Positions 1 to 14,045 of a DNA stretch of 14,045 bases are shown here, one piece after another. The DNA is from Selaginella moellendorffii (lineage: Eukaryota; Plantae; Lycopodiophyta). The stretch is taken from assembly GCF_000143415.4 (NCBI RefSeq), contig NW_003314547.1, positions 1 through 14,045 on the forward strand, in the 5' to 3' direction. Numbering within the stretch: the stretch's first letter is position 1; each line of letters starts with the position of its first letter. The notes under the pieces are model-generated. The model ran no database searches. It was given only the letters and a program-made list of their open reading frames with translations, and was not told where the DNA came from. Both the position numbers and the translations under genes were made by a program.

Positions 1-1723
1 GTTTCTTCTCCTTGCTCAGCATTGAATGGATCTCCATCCCGAAGCGTAGAGCTCTCTCCCTCTTCTCACTGGATTCGGTAGCAAGTGTGGAGCAGGCGCT
101 GATCACCGCGACATGGGTCCGATCGTTAGGTTGAATGGTGGTACAAGCTCTCAGGGCAGAGTAGTACTCCAGAGCAACTTCAGCTTGCCCGTTCGAGCCG
201 CAGCCCTGGATGATCGCGTTGTAGGACACAACACTCCGGGTTCCCATGGAGTCGAAAATCTTGCGAGCCTCCTCAAGCTCGCCACACTTGCAGTACATGT
301 CTACCAGGCAATTCGCCACGAACAGATCTACCTGTTTCTTCTTGCTCAGCATTGAATGGATCTCCATCCCGATGCATAGAGCTCTCTCCCTCTTCTCGCT
401 GGATTCGGTAGCAAGTGTGGAGCAGGCGCTGATCACCGCGACATGTGTCCGATCGTCGGGTTGAATGGTGTTATCAGCTCTCAGGGCAAAGTAGTACTCC
501 AGAGCAACTTCAGCTTGCCCGTTCGAGCCGCAGCCCTGGATGATCGCGTTGTAGGACACAACACTCTGAGTTCCCATGGAGTGGAAAATCTTGCGAGCCT
601 CCTCAAGCTCACCACACTTGCAGTACATGTCTACCAGGCAATTCGCCACGAACAGATCTAGCTGTTTCTTCTCCTTGCTCAGCATTGAATGGATCTCCAT
701 CCCGATGCGTAGAGCTCTCTCCCTCTTCTCGCTGGATTCGGTAGCAAGTGTGGAGCAGGCGCTGATCACCGCGACATGAGTCCGATCGTTGGGTTGAATG
801 GTGGTACAAGCTCTCAGGGCAGAGTAGTACTCCAGAGCAAGTTCAGCTCGCCCGTTCGTGTTGCACCCCTGGATGATCGCGGTGTAGGACACAACACTCC
901 GAGTTCCCATGGAGTGGAAAATCTTGCGAGCCTCCTCAAGCTCGCCACACTTGGAGTACATGTCTACCAGGCAAGTCGCCACGAACAGATCTAGCTGTTT
1001 CTTCTCCTTGCTCAGCATTGAATGGATCTCCATCCCAATGCGTAGAGCCCTCTCCCTCTTCTCGCTGGATTCGGTAGCAAGTCTGGAGCAGGCGCTGATC
1101 ACCGCGACATGTGTCCGATCGTTGGGTTGAATGGTGGTACAAGCTCTCAGGGCAGAGTAGTACTCCAGAGCAACTTCAGCTTGCCCGTTCGAGCCGCAGC
1201 CCTGGATGATCGCGTTGTAGGACACAACACTCCGAGTTCTCATGGAGTCGAAAATCTTGCGAGCCTCCTCAAGCTCGCCACACTTGGAGTACATGTCTAC
1301 CAGGCAAGTCGCCACGAACAGATCTACCTGTTTCTTCTCCTTGCTCAGCATTGAATGGATCTCCATCCCGATGCGTAGAGCTCTCTCCCTCTTCTCGCTG
1401 GATTCGGTAGCAAGTCTGGAGCAGGCGCTGATCACCGCGACATGTGTCCGATCGTTGGGTTGAATGGTGGTACAAGCTCTCAGGGCAGAGTAGTACTCCA
1501 GAGCAACTTCAGCTTGCCCGTTCGAGCCGCAGCCCTGGATGATCGCGTTGTAGAACGCNNNNNNNNNNNNNNNNNNNNNNNNNNNNNNNNNNNNNNNNNN
1601 NNNNNNNNNNNNNNNNNNNNNNNNNNNNNNNNNNNNNNNNNNNNNNNNNNNNNNNNNNCTCCGGGTTCCCATGGAGTCGAAAATCTTGCGAGCCTCCTCA
1701 AGCTCGCCACACTTGCAGTACAT
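1..1723. repeat. Coding tandem repeat, 333-bp unit (one unit 330 bp), about 4.7 units before the gap plus a partial unit after it
   Basis: Equivalent positions recur at 113, 443, 776, 1109 and 1442 (offsets 330, 333, 333, 333). Units are roughly 94-98% identical by eye count. The only indel is an in-frame 3-bp loss near 340 (SKEKKQ to SKKKQ). Confidence 0.97.
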
Positions 1724-2095
1724 ATCGATCAATCCCGTCAACAAGTAGATGTTGCTTTTGTGCTCATCACTCTTGAGCACAGCTTCATGGGCTTGTTTTC
1801 CCAAAGAAAGGGATCTGCTCTCAGCTGAGTCTCTCACGCGGTGTATCAGCCTCCCTAAACTCACCGGTTCATCACCAGCTACAGGTGGGGTATGTGGAGA
1901 TTTGTAGCGGACCGCCTTACCTACAGCTGGGTCAGCGAGCGACTCGAGTTTTGCAGAGACCCAGGTTTTCCTGTTGGCGATGCACAGGCTCTCTCCAGTA
2001 GAAACATGTTTGAAATCCGGGTAGGACTCTGAGAAGAACTTGTTTTTCTTCTTGAACCTGTTGTCCCACCAGAAAGTGGGATCCCTGAACTCCAT
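2..2095 (-). CDS. PLS-class pentatricopeptide repeat protein, 3'-incomplete (C-terminus lies left of the window); candidate organellar RNA-editing/RNA-binding factor
   Basis: Hand translation from ATG 2095 gives MEFRDPTFWWDNRFKKKNKF...SLSLGKQAHEAVLKSDEHKSN-IYLLTGLIDMYCKCGELEEARKIFDSMGTRS, then the gap, then repeating P (VVSYNAIIQGCGSNGQAEVALEYYSALRACTTIQPN, 36 aa), L (DRTHVAVISACSTLATESSEKRERALRIGMEIHSMLSKEKKQVD, 44 aa) and S (LFVANCLVDMYCKCGELEEARKIFDSMGTRS, 31 aa) motifs. No stop in any called base from 2095 to 2, and the frame is the same on both sides of the 100-N gap. LxDMYxKCG..EEARK.FD.M / VVS.NA.I.G are hallmark S/P motifs. The start codon is less certain than the family call. Confidence 0.95.
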   Translation of the reverse strand, partial: MEFRDPTFWWDNRFKKKNKFFSESYPDFKHVSTGESLCIANRKTWVSAKLESLADPAVGKAVRYKSPHTPPVAGDEPVSLGRLIHRVRDSAESRSLSLGKQAHEAVLKSDEHKSNIYLLTGLIDMYCKCGELEEARKIFDSMGTRXXXXXXXXXXXXXXXXXXXXXXXXXXXXXXXXXXAFYNAIIQGCGSNGQAEVALEYYSALRACTTIQPNDRTHVAVISACSRLATESSEKRERALRIGMEIHSMLSKEKKQVDLFVATCLVDMYSKCGELEEARKIFDSMRTRSVVSYNAIIQGCGSNGQAEVALEYYSALRACTTIQPNDRTHVAVISACSRLATESSEKRERALRIGMEIHSMLSKEKKQLDLFVATCLVDMYSKCGELEEARKIFHSMGTRSVVSYTAIIQGCNTNGRAELALEYYSALRACTTIQPNDRTHVAVISACSTLATESSEKRERALRIGMEIHSMLSKEKKQLDLFVANCLVDMYCKCGELEEARKIFHSMGTQSVVSYNAIIQGCGSNGQAEVALEYYFALRADNTIQPDDRTHVAVISACSTLATESSEKRERALCIGMEIHSMLSKKKQVDLFVANCLVDMYCKCGELEEARKIFDSMGTRSVVSYNAIIQGCGSNGQAEVALEYYSALRACTTIQPNDRTHVAVISACSTLATESSEKRERALRFGMEIHSMLSKEKK
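1559..1658. other. Assembly gap (100 N) inside the PPR array
   Basis: Run of N. The flanks are only 4 nt apart in repeat-unit register. Confidence 0.99.
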
Positions 2096-2127
2096 GAGAT
2101 TGTTGAGAAATGACACACACACCACAC

Positions 2128-2136
2128 AAACCCTAG
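2128..2136 (+). promoter_or_regulatory. Telo-box-like motif (AAACCCTAG) just upstream of the PPR ATG
   Basis: aaaccctag lies 33-41 nt upstream of ATG 2095. AAACCCTA is a known plant promoter/5'UTR element, but the motif is short and could occur by chance. Confidence 0.35.
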
Positions 2137-2150
2137 CGCCGCACGCATAC

Positions 2151-2527
2151 CCTAGAAATCCCGATTTGTTATTACTTAACTGTAGTAGTAAAAAGCTCGT
2201 GTTTTCTGTTTTTTCTTTTTCCAATTCTTTTCCTTTTTAAACTTTACAATGTCACAGCTTAACTGCAGCAGCTTAGATGTTTATTGTTAAAAAAAAATCT
2301 CTTTGATATATATAGAAAGTGAGCCAGAAGCAATCAGTTGCTCAAGAGCTGAAGAATCAGTACATGCATAATTTTCAGACAATCTTCTAACTGGCTGAAC
2401 TGATATCAGGATTTTATGATTATTATTATTATTACTAACAACACGCACGAACTTCCTAGAAATCCCGATTTGTTATTCTCTGCATTCATTTTTTATATGA
2501 TCTGTTGCTGCATGCACTTAACTGTAG
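2151..2527. repeat. Dispersed direct repeat upstream of the PPR gene
   Basis: cctagaaatcccgatttgttatt (23 bp) is exact at 2151-2173 and 2455-2477. Each copy is preceded by cacgca and followed by acttaactgtag (2174-2185 and 2516-2527). Confidence 0.85.
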
Positions 2528-3319
2528 GTAGTCTGAATTCAGTTCTTCAATATAATCTGCTAACTAAAAGATATCGATACACTCAATATGCAAAAATAAA
2601 CCACACTCTACACAAATTAAATAAAAAATGCTCTTCATGGGGCCAGAAGCCTCAGGGCACCAGTTTCATGCAGAACACTTTCGCAAATGACTCTCGCCGG
2701 GGGCCCATGCGGTGGTAAAACCTCACAAGGCCTCACGTACTTATATTCACCCTTCTGGCTGCTCTGCAACATACCTTACCACACCAAACTCTTCGCACAT
2801 GAAGCCACACACGGAGGAAAAAACCAGCGAGGCCTCACGTGCTTACAGTCAGTCCTTATATGTGTTCTTGGCCTCGCTCAGTTCATCTCCTTTGTTGTCC
2901 ACCTGCGCTTCTTTACTTCATGTTTTTGCTTGCATGCTTCGATTGACATCTTCAGATTTTCAAGTGAACAATTGTGGCATACCGTGGCTACGTTTTTTGG
3001 CAGAGCTTGGAGGTGCTGAAAGTGGCATTAAGTTCGTGGAGGATTGATCTTGATTTGGATTGTATGGATCTCTATAAATTTTGAAACTTGAGTTTATTTT
3101 TCTTCTTTTTCTTCTGTGTTGCCAAAATAACTGGTGTCAAACTTGCTTTTTCAGACTATCTCTAGTACTTCTGGATGCGATCAAGGCCTGCTGCTCATTG
3201 CTTCAAAGGAGGAGATGATAATTGATCCCTAAAGAGCGAGCTTGATGGTTTTGTTGCTTTCATCAAGTTATCATTCCGCTGCAATCTGAAACACCACATC
3301 GTCCACTGTACTTTCACAG

Positions 3320-3788
3320 GTTTCGAGACAGGTACCCGGAAAAGGTGTATTCCATTGTTGTTCCTCAGGACCTGGACTTGTTTTGCCGCCTCAAGTGTGA
3401 GCTGATCAAGATGAGGGAGAAGCTTGCGATGGTGGAGGCTTGGGCTCGAGCAAGGTTGCAGATGCAGTATGAGGATGATTTCTTCTACAACTATGATGAG
3501 TGGGACAGCTTTGTGGATCTTTCCACATTGAGATCGTTGAGCAGAGAGTGTTGTAGCATAAGTTGTCTCCTGGAGAAATGGTCCTGGCTCAAGGAGCAGT
3601 TTGCACGCATCCACACGTCAAGATTGTTGGAGAGCTCAACTAGAAGATGGAAAAAGGCCAAGGTGACTCATGGGGTTTCAAAACCTGCACTCGGCTTGGT
3701 AAGGTTTGGTGAGTTAAATAAGTATGATGAGTTTGAAGAGACAATCGCAAAAAAAAAAAGGGGGACGTCTAGACGTGAAGCGTGCTAG
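3320..3788 (+). pseudogene. Hypothetical exon-like or degenerate coding segment, unknown product
   Basis: 147-aa ORF with protein-like composition, open in frame from an acceptor-like ctttcacAG at ~3319. It ends shortly after an A-run/G-run that may be a frameshift. No recognisable domain. Confidence 0.25.
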
Positions 3789-4250
3789 CTCTCCTGAATG
3801 GCTTCAAAGAGGTGAGGTGTCTTAAAGAGGAGATGATAGAGCTGAGCATGGAGCTGAACTTGGCTTGTGCTCCTTGTAAGAGCTAACTAGCTAGCAAAAA
3901 CAGAGGAGACGGTGAAGAGGATGCCTCTTGAACTCCAAGAGAACAACAGACCTTTTTTTTAAGGAGGGGAGAAGCTGCTAGCAGCTCAGAAGTATGAGCA
4001 GTGCAGCCTGTGCACCAAGACTGCTGGGTGGTTCGGGGCTTGGTTAAAGTAGGCAACCGGGTGGAGGCAGGGGGTTGGGAGCAATCCAAGGCTTGAGGTA
4101 TGACTTGTCTTTTCTACCTGGTGGAACTCCATCCGAGCATTCCTACTTCATTTCATAATAACTCTCATTTTCACTCTAATTAATTCCTTTTTTTCCTTCC
4201 TCTAACTTAAATCTGTTCACACACAATATTGAGCTAACCACTTCACAATT

Positions 4251-4262
4251 GCTCCGATACCA
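4251..4262 (-). other. Primer-binding-site-like motif (initiator tRNA-Met)
   Basis: The reverse complement is TGGTATCGGAGC, one mismatch from the common plant PBS TGGTATCAGAGC. It is preceded on the minus strand by gtgctaTA-tt, possibly a decayed LTR end (..CA). Confidence 0.45.
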
Positions 4263-4349
4263 AATATAGCACATTTGAATTTGGAGTTGAACTCCAAGCC
4301 CGTTGCGCTACGAAATGAGGGTTCGATACAATCCCACAAGTAGCAACTT

Positions 4350-5096
4350 ATGAAACCTACTCCTAGCAGAATGAGTAGTGTGGGTCATTGCTTCCATTAT
4401 AAAGAGTCAGGACATAGATCCTTGAAATGTCCCAACAAGCATAAGACAAGGTTTCATGTTAATGTCATGAGGGAAGACGGTGATGGTGAAGCTGAAGGGG
4501 TTGACGAGTTGGTTAATGTAGATTACAAGGAAGAGGAGGTGAGTTACTTTCGTTGCTTTCCTCAAGCTTTTCTCGCAGCCAATGCAAACACTAATCCGTT
4601 GATATATCTAGTAGGCTTTGTCTGTGGACACTGAATCCGAGTGATGATTGACACAAAAGCTATGCATAGCATGATATCTGAAGACTTAGTTAAGTTGTTA
4701 AGATTGAATGCTGAGCAAATGTCACATATGCACTTCCGGTTTGCATAAGGTGGACAAGTAGCCAAAAAGTTTGTGAGTGATGTTCAAATAAAAATATCCA
4801 AGTGGAAAGAAAGAGTGAACTTGGTAGTGTTGAAGATACCAGATTTTTAAATGGTGTTTGGTATTGATTTCTTCAACAAGTATATAAAAGGGATTTATGG
4901 TGCTGGACAAAGTTGGATCACATTGAAGTCAGAAGGACATCCCAATGTGTCCTTCCAATTGCAAAAGTGCTCTTCAAAGGATTGGGATGCCAAGTTTCTG
5001 ATTACGAGAGCCACTCAAAAAGCAGCTAAGAAGGGATGTCAAACCTTTTGGGTTCAAGTGATGGAAGCTGAAAGTGTTGGTGACTCAGTTCGAATC
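4350..5096 (+). pseudogene. Gag zinc knuckle and aspartic protease remnant
   Basis: One frame with in-frame stops: CFHYKESGHRSLKCP (CCHC with C to Y, 4389-4430), VMIDTKAMHSMIS (decayed D-T-G-A-T-H-S motif) and MVFGIDF (ILG.D flap-like). Confidence 0.88.
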
Positions 5097-6222
5097 TGTC
5101 ACGAATGTGACTTCAGGTATCAAATGTTACCTGTTGGCTAGTCCTTTTGGATACTCTTTCCTTACTGCCATGACGGCAGGAGGTCGGTATTGCTGGACTT
5201 GTTATCAGTTTCCCACTTGAACTAGTTGAGAAACTGGTCAATGACCGTGTACTTAGATCGGATAAATATAAGGTAGGAACCCTATGTGTTTCTTGCTGAG
5301 CATATTCGGCCTAGTTTGAGAAACTCTTGTCATTGGCTTACACTTGCTAGTATCAAGAACCCCTGCGATATTGAGATTGGTCCCTCAATATCGCTGAATG
5401 ATAGCTTACTGTGTTTGCCAAACACCCTCGCTATCATGCCTTTTGTGTTAGTCTCATTTCGGTCCCAAATGTTATTTATGGAAAGTGTCTAGATTTGCTC
5501 ATTTGGCATATTTATGGAATGTAGAGATTGTCTTGAACACAATGGTGTTCGTCCCGTGTCCAAATTCGCAATCTAAGGACATTCCATATTTAATAAGTTT
5601 CAAGCTTGTCCCAGAGACTAACTCTTGATACTAAGGAAAGCTTGGGGTGAAAGCCTAAAGTGTGTGTTCCTCAACCGGGGGGGGGGGGCTTGTGGGGGGT
5701 TCCAAATGTATAGTAGGGATAGTGGGTAAGTCGGGCATGGCTGACCAACCTGAGGCATAGTCTAGCTTTCGCTTGCATGCCTGTCCTTGTTCTGTGTCTG
5801 GCTTGGGTATAAGCCCAAGTTCCATTCCATGCTAGCTGGTGGAGTACCCATGTCCTCGCGTTAGGCCACCGATATGCCAAAATAGCACAAGACTCCGTTT
5901 GGCTCTGTTTTGCGTGTTGGTCCTGGCATTGGGATGCTGGTTGCTCCAGAACTGTTCCAAGTCACTTCGGGCTCCTGTCCCTTCACTCCTTAGGCTATAT
6001 GCTCGGGAGTTGCTTCATGGACCGGTTCCGTCACTCCTTGGCTCCGTTCTTGGGAGTTTGGCACCATTCCTTCGTTCAGTGGCCCAAGGCCCTAAACCTC
6101 AAGTTCCGCACCACTGTCCTATGGACACGTGGCATATGTCACGTGGCATAAAGAGGGTTTAGGTTCCGCTTCGTGGTGTTATCCTATGGTAAACCACCAT
6201 AGGATAAACCACGTGTGCTACA
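5097..6222. mobile_element. Nested 1126-bp insertion, probable solo LTR, with 5-bp TSD GAATC
   Basis: Begins TGTCAC and ends GCTACA. It is flanked by gaatc at 5092-5096 and 6223-6227. Removing it plus one TSD copy restores the host frame GDSVRI-GDGVNPIPKKILELL. No convincing coding content. Confidence 0.88.
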
Positions 6223-6227
6223 GAATC

Positions 6228-8585
6228 GGTGACGGTGTTAATCCTATACCAAAGAAGATATTGGAGTTGTTGGCGAGGAATCAGGATATCTTCCCAAAGG
6301 ATTTACCACCAGGGCTACCTTCTAGCCGTGAGGCTGATCATCAAATAAGGTTATTCCGGGTTCTAAACCACCTACAAAAGCTCTATATCGATTAAACATC
6401 AAGGAGATGGCTAAACTCAAGAAGCAACTCATGGAGCTTCTTGACAAAGGTCATATCCGACCAAGCAAGTCACCTTATTCTCAATGGCTCGTATTCCACT
6501 ATATCAGATGTTCGTTCCTTTCTCGGTTTGGCAAGATACTATTGCAAGAATTGCTCTTCCGTTGACTGAGTTGATAAAGAGTAGTATTCTGTTTCATTGG
6601 ACACCAACTTGTCAGCGTGCTTGAAGGAGATCTTGATGACAGTTCCTATTCTCCAGATCCCAAATCTTGATAAACCCTTCAAAGTGCATTGTGATGCATC
6701 TGGCTATGCTATTGGTGCCGTGTTGCAACAAGATTATGACAAAGCGGTTGGTGTTATGCTAAGGCGACATGGTTGTCCTATTGCGTTCTATTCCAAGAAA
6801 TTGGATAAAACTCAACGAAGATGGCCAACGCACAAGAAAGAGATGTTTGCTATAGTGTCGGCCTTAGAACACTGGAGACACTGTTTGGGTGGACATACCA
6901 AGGTTTATACAAATAATAACACACTAAGCTACTTTGCTACGCAGCCAAAACTTATGCCGAAGTAGATTCGTTGGCAAGAGAAGCTTGCTAGATATGATAT
7001 TGAAATCATATATAAACCTGGTAAAGACAATATTGTTCTGGATGCATTGAGTCGTCAGGCTCAATTCCGGGAAATATCAGCAATCAGTTCAGATTGGTTG
7101 GAGGATGTTCAGGTTTTGTATGGAAGTGATCCATTAGCGAAGGCAATCTTGCACCGTGCGGAGTTGGTGAAGTAGAAACCTGGTAGTGAAGTGGCAAAAG
7201 TTGCTAGTTGCACCAATGCAAAGCTTCACTTCTTAGTTCAGGATGAGCTTATATTCTGTAAGCAAGAAAGATTGTATCTTCTCTCTAAGGATTTGCAGCA
7301 GTTGTTTCTGTGGGAACATCATGATGTTCCGACAATAGGACATGGTGGAAAACGGAAGACTTTGGCTTCATTGAAAAAGGGATTTTTCTAGTCTGGTATG
7401 GAAGGTGATGTAGCGGACTATGTCCGTTCTTGCCCTATATGCCAGAAATGTAAGCACAAAACTAAGAAGCAGGCTGGAAAGTTGCAGTGCATTCTAGCAC
7501 CGACATAGCCATTTCAAAGTGTGACACTTGATTTTGTCACTTGTTTGCCGAAATCTGAGGGTTATGATACTTTGATGGTGGTTATGGATCGGTTGTCAAA
7601 GATTGCACACTTCATTCCAACTGTGGGAATAGTGAATGTGAAACAAGCAGCAAAGCTCTTTTTCCATGAAGTAGTTCGGGTTTGTGGTCTTCCCGAAGAG
7701 ATGATCTCAAATAGAGATTCGAGATTTACAGGGAAGTTTTGGGGCACACTATTCCAGTTGTTCGGTACCAAGTTGAAGTTTAGTACAGCTTATCATCCTC
7801 AAACCAATGGGCAGACCGAATGCATGAATGCTCAAGTAGAGGATTATCTGCAGTACTATGTCATGGCAGACAAACACCATTGGGTTGAGCATTTAGACAT
7901 AGCAAAAATTTGTTATAACAACACATTTCACAGCACTATTGGCTGTTCTTCATAGGAGATATTGCAAGGGAATGCTTGTGGGGTGCCTCAACAGATAGTT
8001 GTACCAAAACCATTGTCCAAAGTGTTGGTCCTGGCTGTTGAGACTTATGCAGAGTAGCTACACCAAGATTGGTCTAGAGCTACTGAGGCAATGGGCAAAG
8101 CTTAGAATAGGTATTGACGTGATAAGGATCTGCATCGTCAAGATGTATCCTATTAAGTGGGAGATCAGGAGTGGCTATCTTCCCGGAACTTGAACATTAA
8201 GGGATCTTTGTCTCGGAAGCTGTTACCGAGATATGTTAGACCCTATCAGGTGTTAAAACACATTGGTGATGTATCCTATAAGTTAGATTTTCCGAATGAG
8301 TTATCCTAGCTACATAATATGTTTCATGTCAATTTACTGGCACCATATCATGCTGCTGTGGAACGCTCTACGGACATGCGTCTTCCACCAGTGATCATGG
8401 ATGGTGAACCTGAGTATGAAGCTGAGTCTATCTTAGATTCTCGGTTTCGGAGATGGGCTCGTGCGAAGGAATACCTAGTTAAGTGGAAAGGTTACCCGAC
8501 TTGTGAATCAACTTGGGAACCTCTTAGGAATCTTACATATGCTCATGAGCTTGTCACGGAGTATGAGAATCGTAATAAAGATTAG
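6228..8585 (+). pseudogene. Chromovirus pol remnant: partial RT, RNase H, integrase, chromodomain
   Basis: DIFPKDLPPGLP..DHQI, LLDKGHIRPSKSPYS, VRSFLGLARYY, RNase H (HCDASGYAIGAVLQQ, PIAFYSKKL, EMFAIVSALEHWRH), integrase (HDVPTIGHGG..CPICQKC, TLDFVTCLP, MISNRDSRF, STAYHPQTNGQTE) and chromodomain EYEAESILDSR..EYLVKWKGYPTCESTWEP from 8412. Confidence 0.93.
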
Positions 8586-8796
8586 CTTTTGTCAATCTTG
8601 TAATAAATCTTACAAATTAATAAAGTAATATATTTTTATACATCAAAGTGTCGTCTCTTTTGTTCATTAGTACTTGGGTCAGTTTTGGCAGGTTGACTTT
8701 GGCACTTCAATGCATGGGTCCAATCCATAACCATGGGGATCACTATTATAGACTGATCACAAGTCCCTGCCTCTCTCTCGATGAGTCATTCTTGAC

Positions 8797-9143
8797 AAAG
8801 GGGCGTGGTTGTGTAAACAACTTTATCTACCAATTTATAATAGTTGTCTAAATCTTCCCAACGGGGTTGATTTTTTGCTCAGGGGAAGTGGGGCCTTTGG
8901 CCTCCTCCCTATGTTCCTATGGGGAGGGGATGTATCATTCCTTTGTAAGCCGAGTGGTACTTGGAGCAGCAAGGGTGGTTAACTTCATTAGCCATTTCCT
9001 TGTCGGCGATGGCCAGAAGGTGTCTGTGTATTAACGTCTTTAAACGTAAAGGAGAGGTCATTCCATAACTCATTTAAGTCGGTGTGTTTCCCACATAGTG
9101 TGCTTTCCGTTAACTTTCAGAGTTGTTTCCTTGACGGTTTGCT
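8797..9143 (+). repeat. Polypurine-tract-like motif and probable start of the chromovirus 3' LTR (runs into the gap)
   Basis: aaaggggcgtgg is followed within a few nt by TGT (8810/8812), about 230 bp after the chromodomain stop. There is no second LTR copy in the window to confirm it. Confidence 0.6.
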
Positions 9144-9404
9144 NNNNNNNNNNNNNNNNNNNNNNNNNNNNNNNNNNNNNNNNNNNNNNNNNNNNNNNNN
9201 NNNNNNNNNNNNNNNNNNNNNNNNNNNNNNNNNNNNNNNNNNNNNNNNNNNNNNNNNNNNNNNNNNNNNNNNNNNNNNNNNNNNNNNNNNNNNNNNNNNN
9301 NNNNNNNNNNNNNNNNNNNNNNNNNNNNNNNNNNNNNNNNNNNNNNNNNNNNNNNNNNNNNNNNNNNNNNNNNNNNNNNNNNNNNNNNNNNNNNNNNNNN
9401 NNNN
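9144..9404. other. Assembly gap (261 N)
   Basis: Run of N. Confidence 0.99.
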
Positions 9405-9933
9405 CGGCCTGGTTTGAGAAACTCGTATCATTGGCTTGCACTTGCTGGTATCAAGAACCCTCATATATTGAGACTAGTCCCTCAATATTGCTAGATGATA
9501 ACTTACTGTGTCTGCCAAACACCCTCGTTATCATGCCCTTTGTGTTAGTCTTATTTTGGTCTCGAATGCTATTTATGGAAAGTGTCTAAATTCGCTCATT
9601 TGGCATATCTACGGAGTGTAGAGATCGGCCTGAACACAATGGTGTTCATCCCATGTCCAAATTCACAATTTGAGGACATTCCATATTTAGTAAGTTTTGA
9701 GCTTGTCCCAAAGACTAACTCCTGGTACTAAGGGAAGTTTGGGGGGTTCCAAATGTATAGTAGGGATAATAGTTGAATTGCATGTCCGACCACCTGAGAC
9801 ATTAGTTTGGCTCCTGTTGGGCTGTGTCACTCCTTCTTTCTTCTACATCTGGCTTGGGTCTAAGCCCAAGCTCCATGCTGGTCTAGTTGGTGGGGTACCC
9901 TCCTCCTCGCGTTAGGCCACCAGTATGCCAAAA
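9405..9933. mobile_element. Partial second copy of the 5097-6222 insertion family, same orientation
   Basis: Collinear with ~5327-5883, from cggcct(a/g)gtttgagaaactc to ttaggccacc..tatgccaaaat, with many transitions and a ~50-bp indel. Confidence 0.92.
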
Positions 9934-11412
9934 TTGTGACCGTCTGGCTGGTCTAACAATTGTGCACATACTTATCAACACCTGACTTCATTCCAGGCCA
10001 AAATAAATGCTTCTCTACCAAAACACATGTCCTCGATGTCCTGCACTTGGTGCAACGAACACTCTTACAGAATCCACTGTAAAAGAACATCATCTCTAGG
10101 AACCATATCCTGATTCCTCTTGACTAGGAAACCATCTCGTACATCGAAGGAAGCACAATTACATTGGAAGAGGTGCCCCCTTCAAAACAACTGCATGTTC
10201 CTTCACTACAAAGGACTCGAAGTTAGTGAGCTCCTTAATGTCATCCAACAAACCTCTAAAGAGCTTCCCAAACAAGATAGAGTTCACCATCCTAGACAAT
10301 GGAGAAACAACCACCTTTACTGTCCACTCCTTTCAGAAACAGGAAAATTGTCTTAAAGAAAAGTTGTAGATCTTGGAAACCTAGCAACTTTGCTTTAAAC
10401 ATCAATCTTCCAAATTCACAAGTAATCTGCAGTCAAAATTACCCTTTGACTTTTACTCGATAATCCCTAGGGAAATTGGTTTTCGTCACCTTAAACCCCA
10501 GGGCTAAACTCCTCTGGTGGTTTGGAATCTGCACATCCATTTCCTGCAAAATCTCCAGTCAATGAGCTACCCGGCCTCAAAGCTCCATCTGGCAAGTGAA
10601 AAGAGTGACAAGCCTATCCCGAGTTGGCAGTTCAGCTAAATTGTGTCAAACTTGTGGCTTATGTAGGCAATAGGACAGCAGTCTTGCATCAAGACAGCTC
10701 CTAGACCCTCATCACTAGCCTTGTTACTGAAAATATGCATAGCACCAGAGTCAAAGAGAACATTGAGCACTTGGCTATGCACAACTCATTGCACAAACAA
10801 CCGTACAGCTCAGATGAGTTGATACAATTCTTCTTCACTCCTTCAGAAATAGTGACAGGAACATGAGTAGATACATTCTCTCCTTGGTCCACACTGACAC
10901 CCATGGCCTCACTAGGATCAGAAAGAGAAAAGGACTCATGAGCCATACCCTCTGAACGCATAGACTCCATAGTGTGAGCCTTAGCCTTCTACCACAAGTG
11001 GCTTATCACAAGCAAATATTTGTAGAATATACATGATTGCTTTAACTGCTCAAATGCTTCTTGACACTTTCACCCCACACCAACTTAACATGCTTGGTGG
11101 TGTTTCAAAGAATATCCATCAAAGGAGCAGCAATCAAGGAGAAGTCCTTCACAAACCGGCAAAAGACTCCCACCATACCAAGGAAACCCATGCACAATAG
11201 GGGGAACAAGCTAGTCAACGACTATCTGAGTCTTTTGAGGATCTTCCCGCACACCATCTCGTGGCACCACATGTCCGAGATAGGTGATCTCCTCCAAGAA
11301 GAACTCACACTTTGACAGTTTAGAATACAGCTTGTTCTCCCTCAATAGTGGCAACATTTGCCTCACATGCATCTCATGTTCCTCCTTAGTCATAGGACAT
11401 CATCAAAGTAGT
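9934..11412 (-). mobile_element. Highly degenerate Ty3/gypsy pol fragment (RT C-terminal half and integrase zinc finger)
   Basis: The minus strand gives YFDDVL (~11392-11409), EEHEMHVRQML..LYSKLSKCEFFLEEITYLGHVV and FLGMVGVFCRFVKDFSLIAAPL. Near 9940-10140 it gives DGFLVK..VPRDD..IL*EC..APSAGHRG..FWPGMKSGVDKYVHNC*TSQ. Confidence 0.82.
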
Positions 11413-11569
11413 GCCTCGCACATGAGATTGCATAACTCTATCAAAAGAACTGTTTGATAATAGTTAGCCTCGGCCATCATATGAAGCAACATCTTTGCTG
11501 AGTTAGAAAAGACTTCTTGAGCATTCCAAAGCTTCAAAACGAGATAGTCAAAGGATCTCAGCTAGCAAT

Positions 11570-14045
11570 AAGTTGTTCTAGTATGGTTGGTCTTCTTTTG
11601 ATTGATTCTTCTTAGTTGATTTTGTATTGTATTGCCATTCGTAATGATGAAACGATGTACTTAAGTGGTGTCAAAGCTTCAAGGCTATAGGTGAGCTTGA
11701 ATGGTGTCGAATTTGTTGAAACCTTATATGTGGTTCAATATGCCTACAAAGCATCATAAATGTGATCGTCCTAGTCTTTCTGATTTATTTTCACAATTTT
11801 CATGAGGATATTTTTGAGTGTCTTGTTTGTAGACTCTGCTTGACCATTGCCTTGAGGGCAGTATAGTGTTGAACCCCTGTGTTTGGATAGTGAATTCTTG
11901 AGTCAAGATTTTGATGGTTTCATTGATGAAGTGTGTTCCTTGATCAATGATGAGTTCTCAAAGTAAACCATATCTTGTGATGATGTTTTTGTAGATGAAC
12001 TGTGTTATGTTCTTTGTGTTGAACTTCAGCCCATTTTATCATATAGTCTATTGCAATTAGAATGTGCTAGTTTTGCTTGGAGCTTGTCATAAGTGGACCA
12101 ACAAAGTCGAGTCCCCATCATTGAAAAGGTTCGAGTGGAGTTTTTGGATGAAGTTCTTGAGTTTAATTTTTTGGTGTATACTTGGTTCATTGGTAAATAT
12201 CACATTTTTGACAAAACTTGGCCAAAGTGTTGGCCACCAAAGTCTTGCTTGTAAAATTTTTTGAGTTGTGATTTCTCTAGCAAAGCGTCTTCCTATTTGT
12301 CCATAGTAGGCTTTTTCAAGTAGATCTTGTGTTTCTTCTAGGTTTGCACATCTTCGTAAAATGTTGTCTCTTCCTTGTTTGTACAGTTTTCTTCCCACGA
12401 CTGAATATGGTCTTGTCCTCAAGACAAATTGCTTACGTTTGTTAGAGGTTGAATGTTAACTTGGTATTGTTGCTGTTATAAGGTAATAATAGATGTTGTC
12501 CATCTAGGTTGGTGATGTGTGGATTTGAAGGATATTGGAGTCAGGAAAGTCATCCATGTTGTGTTTCGATTGTTCATCAATTGTAATGTGGCTTAGGTGT
12601 TCATGTTCTCTTCCAAGCTTGTAGATGATCTTGAAATTGTATTCTTGAAGTAGTAAGAACCATTGTGCAATTTTGTCAGTGAGGATTGTTTTGTTGAGAA
12701 GGTGAAGGAAGTTATAGAGTAGATAGTATCGAAACTTCTGGAGTGCGTAGATCATTGCTAGAGCTTCTTTTTCAGTTGTAATGTAATTCATTTTGGTTGA
12801 GTTGAGTCTTCAATTTGCATAGTAGATTGGTTGGTCTTTATGATCTTCTTGTTGTTGCAAAAGGATCGCTTTGAGGGCATAGTTGGAGTCATCGACTTGG
12901 ATGTTGAAGTCTTTGTTCTAGTTTTGTTGAGCTTGGGTGAGGGAATTCTTGAGGTTGATAAAGGCATTTTGACAATCTTGAGTCTAGTTGTAAACTTGAT
13001 TCTCCTTGAGGAGTTCAGTGATGGGTTTTGCAATTTTGGCGTAGTCTTTCATGAATCTTCGATGGTATCCCATCTTGCTGAGGAATGATTGAAGGCTTGA
13101 AATCTCGAATGGATGTTGTATGTTGATGACTGTGAGGGTCTTGTCTTTGTGGATGAGGATTCCTTCTTTAGAAACTACATGTCCAAGTAGAATTCCTAAT
13201 TTGACGAAGAAAATGCACTTGTCAAGGTTCAATGTAATATTGTGTAATATTGTCAAGGTTCATGGCATTTGATAAAGCATTTCTCTAAGCGTTAGAGATG
13301 ATCTTATTTTTTGCTAAAGACATTGAAGTCATCCATAAATACTCACATAAATTCAGTGAGGTATTCTCAAAAAGTGTCAGTGATAATCCATTGAAACATG
13401 AATGGTGCATTGGAGAGACTAAAAGGTATATGAAGGTAGGCATATGCTCCCCATGGATTGATGAAAGCCATCTTGTGTTGATCTTCAAACGCAATATGTA
13501 CTTGATTGTGTCTACTAAAGCCATTGAGAAAGGAGTACATCTCATATTCTACAACTGCATCAAGAATTTCATTAGAGAATAGAATTGAAAAGGTGTCCTT
13601 TTGAGTTGTATCGTTGAGCTTCTTATAGTTGATATAAATCCTAAGTTTATTGTTCTTCTTGGGGACAATGACTAGTGGTGATAGCCATTTTAGATTTTGA
13701 ATTGGGAAGATGAATTTAACATTTTTGAGTTTATCAAGCTCTTCCTTGACTTTGGTTTGTATGTTGGGATTCATTCGGTAGGCTGATTGCTTTGTTGGTA
13801 CTTCTTGTGATAGAAGCTCAATCTGTGTAGAGTTCAGGTGGAATTCCTCGTAAGTCAGTCTAAGACCAGGTGAAAACATCTTGATAAGTGTCAAGTAGTT
13901 GGGTTGCATTTGCTTTAAAATCTTCATCAAGCTCTTGGGCAATATGAAGTTTTTTTGGTTCTTCAAGTATTCCAAGGTTAATTTCTTGAGCTGGTTCTTC
14001 AAGGTTGAGTATAGGTGTAAGTCATGATCCTTCTTGTGTAGACTG
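11570..14045 (-). mobile_element. Degenerate non-chromovirus Ty3/gypsy pol (RT, RNase H, integrase), continuing beyond the right edge
   Basis: RT: KWLSPLVIVPKKNNKLRI, EMYSFLNGFSRHNQ, PFSLSNAPFMFQ, VFMDDF (~13325-13342), KCIFFVKLGILLGHVVS. RNase H: NYITTEKEALAMIYALQKFRYYL. Integrase: WGLDFVGPL, DQGTHFIN, PQGNGQAESTNKTL. The FMDD motif and overall style resemble Athila-related non-chromoviruses; clade not determined. Left boundary approximate. Confidence 0.9.

Follow-up and report, generated by a model that had tools for sequence, protein, structure and literature searches.

What is encoded by the long open frame on the minus strand at the left end of this stretch of Selaginella moellendorffii DNA, and is it part of a maintained gene or a remnant of one? 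The stretch, referred to as the window throughout, comprises 14,045 nucleotides (nt) of this spikemoss (NCBI RefSeq assembly GCF_000143415.4, contig NW_003314547.1, positions 1 to 14,045 of the forward strand). An original prediction, made from the sequence without database searches, had placed in its first 2,095 positions a hidden, intact gene for a pentatricopeptide repeat (PPR) protein, built from near-identical triplets of P-, L- and S-type motifs (PLS). We consider it likely that the window holds the 5′ part of a member of a young PLS-DYW gene family whose arrays are real, kept in frame and under constraint. Judged by its sequence, this spikemoss gene probably encodes an organelle RNA-editing-type protein with near-identical modules; the copy in the window could be either functional or non-functional.

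A minus-strand ATG at 2095–2093 opens a frame that meets no stop up to the window edge. It consists of 145 codons and 2 nt between the ATG and an assembly gap of 100 undefined bases (N) (2095–1659), followed by 519 stop-free codons to the left of the gap (1558–2). The frame had been missing from the list of open reading frames (ORFs) on which the original prediction was based because ORFs reaching the window edge are not listed there. Tandem Repeats Finder detected a single array in the window, at 1–1553, with a period of 333, 4.7 copies, 95% matches and 0% indels. The five units share 94.2–97.9% pairwise DNA identity, and the sole indel among them is an in-frame 3-nt deletion in unit 4. Pfam called PPR repeats across the whole tract (2–1558, minus strand), with E-values of 5e-59 for PPR_2, 1e-50 for PPR and 1.5e-29 for PPR_1. 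Set against motif landmarks, the 333-bp unit resolves into a P1 motif of 36, an L1 motif of 44 and an S1 motif of 31 amino acids (aa), i.e., 111 residues, with L1 exceeding the usual length by 9 aa. The window copy thus displays the hallmarks of the PLS class, namely tandem PPR motifs in P-L-S order with a P motif of about 35 aa, a longer L and an S of about 31 aa. In these respects the Pfam hits and the repeat period bear out the proposed gene of near-identical 111-aa triplets, and the predicted 94–98% unit identity, the lack of stops and the single in-frame indel were all recovered. Only one part of the word "intact" can be upheld: the frame is indeed open to the edge, but the C-terminus lies beyond the window and the array contains a gap. 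The gene is composed of the following elements, where L001 to L008 denote the eight further stretches, described below, that carry sister copies:

2093..2095, minus strand: start codon of the PPR gene, the same ATG as in copy L004b.
1946..2092, minus strand: N-terminal leader with OSB-like PDF signature, a W>C exchange and an in-frame 6-nt deletion (translation, copy alignment).
1751..1945, minus strand: unique leader linker, residues ~51–115, with a further in-frame 6-nt deletion (copy alignment).
1659..1750, minus strand: initial S-type PPR motif with T as its code residue at position 5, interrupted by the gap 2 nt beyond "...GTR" (translation, Pfam).
1559..1658, no strand: assembly gap of 100 N within a repeat unit (repeat spacing).
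1229..1558, minus strand: unit 1, a P1-L1-S1 triplet whose first residue falls in the gap, code NN / VD / TS.
896..1228, minus strand: unit 2, 111 aa, code NN / VD / TS.
563..895, minus strand: unit 3, 111 aa, code TN / VD / NS.
233..562, minus strand: unit 4, 110 aa, with the 3-nt in-frame deletion, code ND / VD / NS.
2..232, minus strand: unit 5, first 77 aa and then the window edge, P1 code NN.
2096..4149, no strand: upstream non-coding DNA, duplicated along with the gene (alignment to L001).

The array is preceded by a leader of 145 residues that ends in the first S-type motif. Directly from the protein start, this leader carries a WWDNR ... PDFKH ... TGE signature resembling that of OSB proteins, which are plant single-stranded-DNA-binding proteins. 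The OSB-type PDF motif spans about 50 aa and bears a conserved Pro-Asp-Phe signature (PMC6963530). The likeness is set by this motif description, the signature being visible within the first 50 residues of a leader that matches no Pfam model. No obvious transit peptide lies ahead of it in the window copy or in L001, L003, L006, L007 and L004b. The leader of the window copy has suffered three in-frame deletions of 12, 6 and 6 nt, the 12-nt deletion, right after the ATG, being common to the window copy and L004b. Just 5′ of the ATG (window ~2110–2130), a (TG)n run differs by 2 nt in length between copies in a six-copy alignment. Its length sets the frame of an upstream ATG that would add 17 residues; L003 has this ATG in frame, the window copy and L004b have it out of frame.

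The assembly gap can be assessed from the repeat spacing. One 73-nt segment of the repeat reappears at distances of 330, 333 and 333 nt and then at 429 nt across the 100-N gap. As 429 minus 100 leaves 329, either 4 nt are missing, or 4 nt plus a number of whole 333-nt units. Added to the 2 nt that the split codon retains in front of the gap, the 4 missing nt keep the frame. The 100 N are frame-preserving as well, by arithmetic accident only (437 + 100 = 537 = 3 × 179). The six bases adjacent to the gap (1553–1558) are unlike those in every other unit, yield two odd residues and are probably read-end errors. The window gene was read across the gap by reference with X, and the gap was filled with no bases. 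The window copy thus has at least 4.7 units, and the gap may hold further whole units.

Sister copies supply the part of the gene that lies outside the window. A search with the leader returned four S. moellendorffii proteins (NCBI XP models) at 94–95% identity, with four more in their cluster. The DNA of all eight XP loci was retrieved from assembly GCA_000143415.2 and proved to contain 11 sister copies on eight stretches. Every stretch carries the 333-bp array with 1–8 units per copy, and none of the genes contains an N. The array is hence not a product of the gap. Unit number and state were tabulated for ten sister copies:

L007: 2 units, intact, 783 aa.
L003: 4 units, intact, 1012 aa.
L006 (plus strand): 4 units, intact, 1009 aa.
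L001: 6 units, intact, 1234 aa.
L004b: 8 units, intact, 1449 aa.
L006 (minus strand): 1 unit, frameshifted.
L005: 4 units, PDF region frameshifted.
L004a: 5 units, broken at both ends.
L002: 6 units, PDF region deleted.
L008: 6 units, DYW end broken.

Five sister copies form a single unbroken ORF from the leader through the array and the E motif to the DYW end. The PDF-like leader region has been lost in L002, L004a and L005 through out-of-frame deletions. No retrieved locus reaches a 98.5% match to the window, which therefore represents a twelfth copy, and we regard it as probable that these are at least 12 copies on nine stretches of a young family of intronless genes. Some 2 kb of upstream sequence went along with the gene in the duplication (window 1659–4149 is 92.6% identical to L001 7941–10461), so the copies arose via segmental duplication. 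Pairs of loci representing two haplotypes of one locus were looked for among the retrieved stretches and none was found, flank identity being 91–97% with partial coverage. L004 and L006 each contain a second, unannotated copy on the minus strand, resulting in inverted pairs. In L004 the two copies (4214–8560, minus, and 10735–13794, plus) stand head to head, 2.2 kb separating their starts; the L006 pair (10001–13027, plus, and 15507–17600, minus) is arranged tail to tail. The intact eight-unit copy on the minus strand of L004 is without any public gene model.

Translated in full, the sister ORFs match E_motif (8e-9) and DYW_deaminase (2e-28, model positions 1–92/93) in Pfam, and the DYW catalytic residues HSE and CxDCH are present. 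The E1/E2/DYW ending expected of such genes is therefore found in the sister loci, with the E stretch read by eye as E1 plus E2; the window copy ends at the window edge before that part. The encoded protein would accordingly begin with the OSB-like PDF leader and one S motif, continue with 1–8 tandem, near-identical 111-aa P1-L1-S1 triplets and a unique P1-L1-S1-P2-L2-S2 tail, and end in the E motif and a canonical DYW cytidine deaminase. When AlphaFold2 was given the 783-aa, two-unit sister protein as a single sequence, it modelled the array as regular helix pairs at pLDDT 70–89, with a long second helix of 21 residues in L1; leader and DYW part stay below pLDDT 50, and the model is confident in the array only. 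To put the regularity of the array into perspective, the best 100-aa self-identity at lags of 60–259 residues, which take in the triplet spacing, was determined for 147 other PPR proteins. It had a median of 40 and a maximum of 70, compared with 98–99 for the array described here, an identity well beyond the range of that sample.

The arrays provide enough sequence to ask whether they are maintained. Fifty units were collected, 48 of them distinct, together covering 16.5 kb. With P values that are indicative only, as the variant counts are non-independent through shared unit ancestry and tract exchange, the 125 distinct single-base variants in the 48 units include no stop where 3.6–5.1 are expected (P = 0.006–0.03), and the singleton variants comprise 30 synonymous and 35 non-synonymous changes, where neutrality would predict a synonymous share of about 0.26 (P = 5e-4). 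By codon position the singletons are distributed 18/15/32, an excess at third positions (P = 0.02). Two indels occur in the 48 units, both of 3 nt, and frameshifts are absent. Upstream non-coding DNA of the same copies has accumulated 55 indel events, 25% of which are multiples of three; of the six indels in coding sequence of the window and the intact copies, every one is. In the unique tail, synonymous divergence (dS) is 0.01–0.03 among the intact-tailed L001–L003, with a dN/dS of 0.1–0.5; against the frameshifted L004a, dS is 0.11–0.16. On these indicative tests, the arrays are real and kept in frame, and rare variants are under purifying selection. The lack of stops and frameshifts together with the bias among rare variants is therefore evidence against the array being an intron, a neutral remnant or an assembly artefact.

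Public gene models present a different picture. The array is missing from all eight XP models. Seven excise it between one and the same GT, in the S1 codons for "DMY", and AG, in the P1 codons for "ALRA", which leaves a chimeric stub of 18 residues that does not form a PPR motif. Five NCBI models also drop a 117-nt in-frame piece with strong GTGAG...CAG borders, located inside the unique S1/P2 motifs; this removal (L001, L003–L008 set; XP models P0121, P0123, P0124 and P0247–P0250) could reflect genuine alternative splicing or an error of gene prediction. Among proteins of 285–2160 aa in a set of 5.8 billion, a word search with the array returned ordinary PPR proteins at no more than 37% identity among the matches listed. 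The blanks from these searches, with the window array and with a full-length sister array, cover the best 8000 candidates within a limited length range and do not prove absence. An exhaustive phmmer/HMMER search with one unit against 1.84 billion representatives gave a single hit exceeding 42% identity; this protein, EFJ11447.1, is a partial model (223 aa) for a sister locus, with one more partial model in its cluster. In the word and HMMER searches, no public protein thus retains more than about two units.

Turning to the differences between units, the common variants behave unlike the rare ones. Variants present in at least ten units comprise 2 synonymous and 15 non-synonymous changes and differ from the singletons in this respect (Fisher P = 0.011). 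The ratio of non-synonymous to synonymous polymorphism (pN/pS) between units is 1.63 in P1, 0.71 in L1 and 0.94 in S1. The ten most variable columns, each split about 50:50, are P1-12, P1-13, P1-5, P1-30, P1-31, P1-36, L1-13, L1-43, S1-5 and P1-16. They include three of the four code positions of the P and S motifs (hypergeometric P = 0.002), and P1-5, the last P1 residue and S1-5 rank 3rd, 6th and 9th in variability among the 111 columns. Unit-to-unit variation does therefore reach code positions, as had been proposed. Within P1, positions 5/12/13/16 form one linked cassette (r2 0.7–0.8) and positions 30/31/36 another (r2 1.0), and the two are unlinked (r2 0.02) though only about 40 nt apart. 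Because the cassettes associate almost freely, the four canonical P-motif code pairs are about equally common (TD 14, NN 13, ND 12, TN 8), and the predicted code string differs in every copy. This pattern is a mosaic produced by exchange between units and not variation restricted to specificity residues as in transcription activator-like effectors (TALEs). Of the TALE-like architecture suggested originally, the near-identical modules stand, but variation confined to specificity residues does not, as three of the ten dimorphic columns are code positions.

How old is the array, and how does it change? Units are about as alike within arrays (95.2% identity; range 92–100% in six copies) as between loci (94.8%). 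They differ by about 5%, and the unique C-terminal parts of the intact sister copies, at the dS values given above, are more alike; it follows that the array predates the gene duplications. Units 1–3 of L001 and L002 match position by position at 97.6–99.1%, and the correspondence is partial overall. Even so, the arrays are still changing, with unit numbers of 1–8 and some local spread. A private change, L19V, occurs in four window units out of five but is absent from the 45 units elsewhere. In L004b, units 3–5 and 6–8 (L004 ~5350–7400, minus strand) form a duplicated 999-bp block with identities of 100, 100 and 98.8%, stemming either from a very recent unequal crossover or from an assembly duplication. 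By these comparisons, the array has been shuffled instead of homogenised, with some local spread as well. The proposed homogenisation is thus not supported by the identities, and a recent tandem amplification is only partly borne out, since the units are older than the gene copies.

In the predicted mode of action, the tract would bind single-stranded organellar RNA with one motif per base, and the DYW domain would deaminate a cytidine downstream of the bound stretch; differing unit orders would address differing RNA sequences. By analogy with characterised relatives, we infer that the proteins serve as site-recognition factors in organellar C-to-U RNA editing and that module shuffling would be a route by which the family acquires new binding specificities. 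It is conceivable, though rather doubtful, that the family represents a natural "programmable" PPR scaffold in which the P1 cassettes and one S1 residue set the base that is read.

Several observations weigh against a maintained PLS-DYW family that includes the window copy. Five of the 11 sister copies are damaged, so part of the family is decaying, and overall pN/pS between units is about 1. The window copy carries the W>C exchange in the "ESLW" stretch of its PDF-like signature and eight non-synonymous versus three synonymous private changes; it sits among decayed retrotransposons, its array holds a gap and its C-terminus lies beyond the window edge. Common variants come in linked blocks that include non-code residues, the variant counts are non-independent, all loci stem from one Sanger whole-genome assembly, and in the NCBI models the array is spliced out between canonical GT..AG borders. 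The broken leaders and tails, the pN/pS near 1, the private changes and the decayed Ty3/gypsy flanks are what would be expected if the window copy, perhaps together with most other members, were a decaying pseudogene whose array has remained open because of recent duplication. We consider this unlikely, since neither a stop nor a frameshift occurs in 16.5 kb of array at about 5% divergence, similarly diverged upstream DNA is rich in indels, each of the six coding indels in the window and the intact copies has a length divisible by three against a baseline of 25%, and rare variants are biased towards synonymous changes and third codon positions.

The same data bear on the NCBI models, according to which the array is an intron and the real protein a short PPR-DYW protein of about 470–620 aa. 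Eight models agree on this structure with canonical borders, but an intron would stay neither stop- nor frameshift-free over 16.5 kb, nor would it show a third-position bias; the spliced product contains the chimeric stub instead of a PPR motif, and since each unit contains this GT and AG, a gene predictor can always find them. An intron is therefore very unlikely. It is even harder to credit that the array is an assembly artefact in which reads of a few units or two haplotypes were stacked. Such an origin would fit the gap in the window array with its unreliable-looking neighbouring bases, the 999-bp block at 100% identity in one sister array and the single Sanger assembly behind all data, yet 11 other copies have gap-free arrays, 48 of the 50 units are distinct in sequence, and the correspondence of the first three units in L001 and L002 is not expected from random mis-stacking. 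A young PLS-DYW family with real, constrained in-frame arrays remains the reading that we favour.

Elsewhere in the window lie two retroelement remnants, both split into many short ORFs, and a second gap:

4350–8585, plus strand: decayed chromodomain Ty3/gypsy long terminal repeat (LTR) retrotransposon remnant (RT_RNaseH 6597–6965, Chromo 8319–8585).
~9140–9400: second N run (assembly gap), between the retroelement remnants.
12087–14002, minus strand: second decayed LTR-retrotransposon remnant (RT_RNaseH 12504–12791).

Another PPR gene is found near one family member: in L003, an unrelated 291-aa PPR ORF with ordinary degenerate motifs (18247–19119, minus strand) lies 5 kb downstream of the family copy.

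Near-identical tandem modules with variable specificity residues and recombination between repeats are known from the TALE arrays of Xanthomonas. These differ from the family in that they bind DNA, consist of a single 34-aa repeat and vary almost exclusively at two residues. Close in architecture are the PLS-class PPR-DYW factors for organellar C-to-U RNA editing in land plants, such as moss PPR56 (PMC10482289), which share the P-L-S triplets, the P2-L2-S2 motifs, the E motif, a DYW domain with HxE and CxxCH and the intronless gene structure, and for which specificity is likewise expected from residue 5 and the last residue of the P and S motifs. The family stands apart through triplets that are 94–98% identical in DNA compared with about 30–40% in protein, a 44-aa L1 with a longer second helix, a PDF-like N-terminus without obvious transit peptide, and a unit number that varies from 1 to 8 between paralogues. 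That PPR tracts lengthen when blocks of motifs are duplicated is a well-accepted idea and is documented in radish Rfo, where the ten C-terminal repeats stem from a duplicated five-repeat block (PMC2848758). For PCMP/PLS genes, internal block duplication has been modelled by Rivals et al., as cited in the same paper. Both cases resemble the family in that PPR tracts grow by tandem multi-motif block duplication and change by intragenic recombination. In both, however, the duplications are old and diverged, and Rfo is of the P class with a stable number of repeats, whereas the family has many near-identical blocks in variable number.

The synthetic proteins dsn3PLS-DYW and 9S-DYW (PMC8809517) also employ a single repeated scaffold in which mainly the code residues are changed; in contrast, the family is natural, uses the whole PLS triplet as its unit and shows non-code residues co-varying with code residues. 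Regular monotypic arrays of S-type motifs are common in Selaginella (PMC8809517). They too are lineage-specific regular PPR tracts in editing-type proteins, but consist of single 31-aa S motifs that have not been described as near-identical, as opposed to P-L-S triplets. Among 364 species, S. moellendorffii is reported to have the most PPR genes, with copies that are often flanked by LTR elements (PMC13386178). In the literature covered, neither natural PLS triplet arrays of such identity nor variation in unit number is described; coverage of subscription journals was limited, and novelty is thus unproven.

Spikemosses, ferns and hornworts have hundreds to thousands of PLS editing factors, and the fast rise of new specificities among them is an open question. 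As the arrays of this family still resemble their building blocks, differ in unit number between copies, carry code residues reshuffled among otherwise identical modules and show signs of selection on the frame and on rare variants, the model of growth by block duplication becomes directly testable. The case also reveals a blind spot in annotation, in that repeat-rich PPR genes may be systematically mis-modelled. The family moreover offers a natural PLS scaffold that would tolerate swaps of code residues, which is relevant to designer RNA editors.

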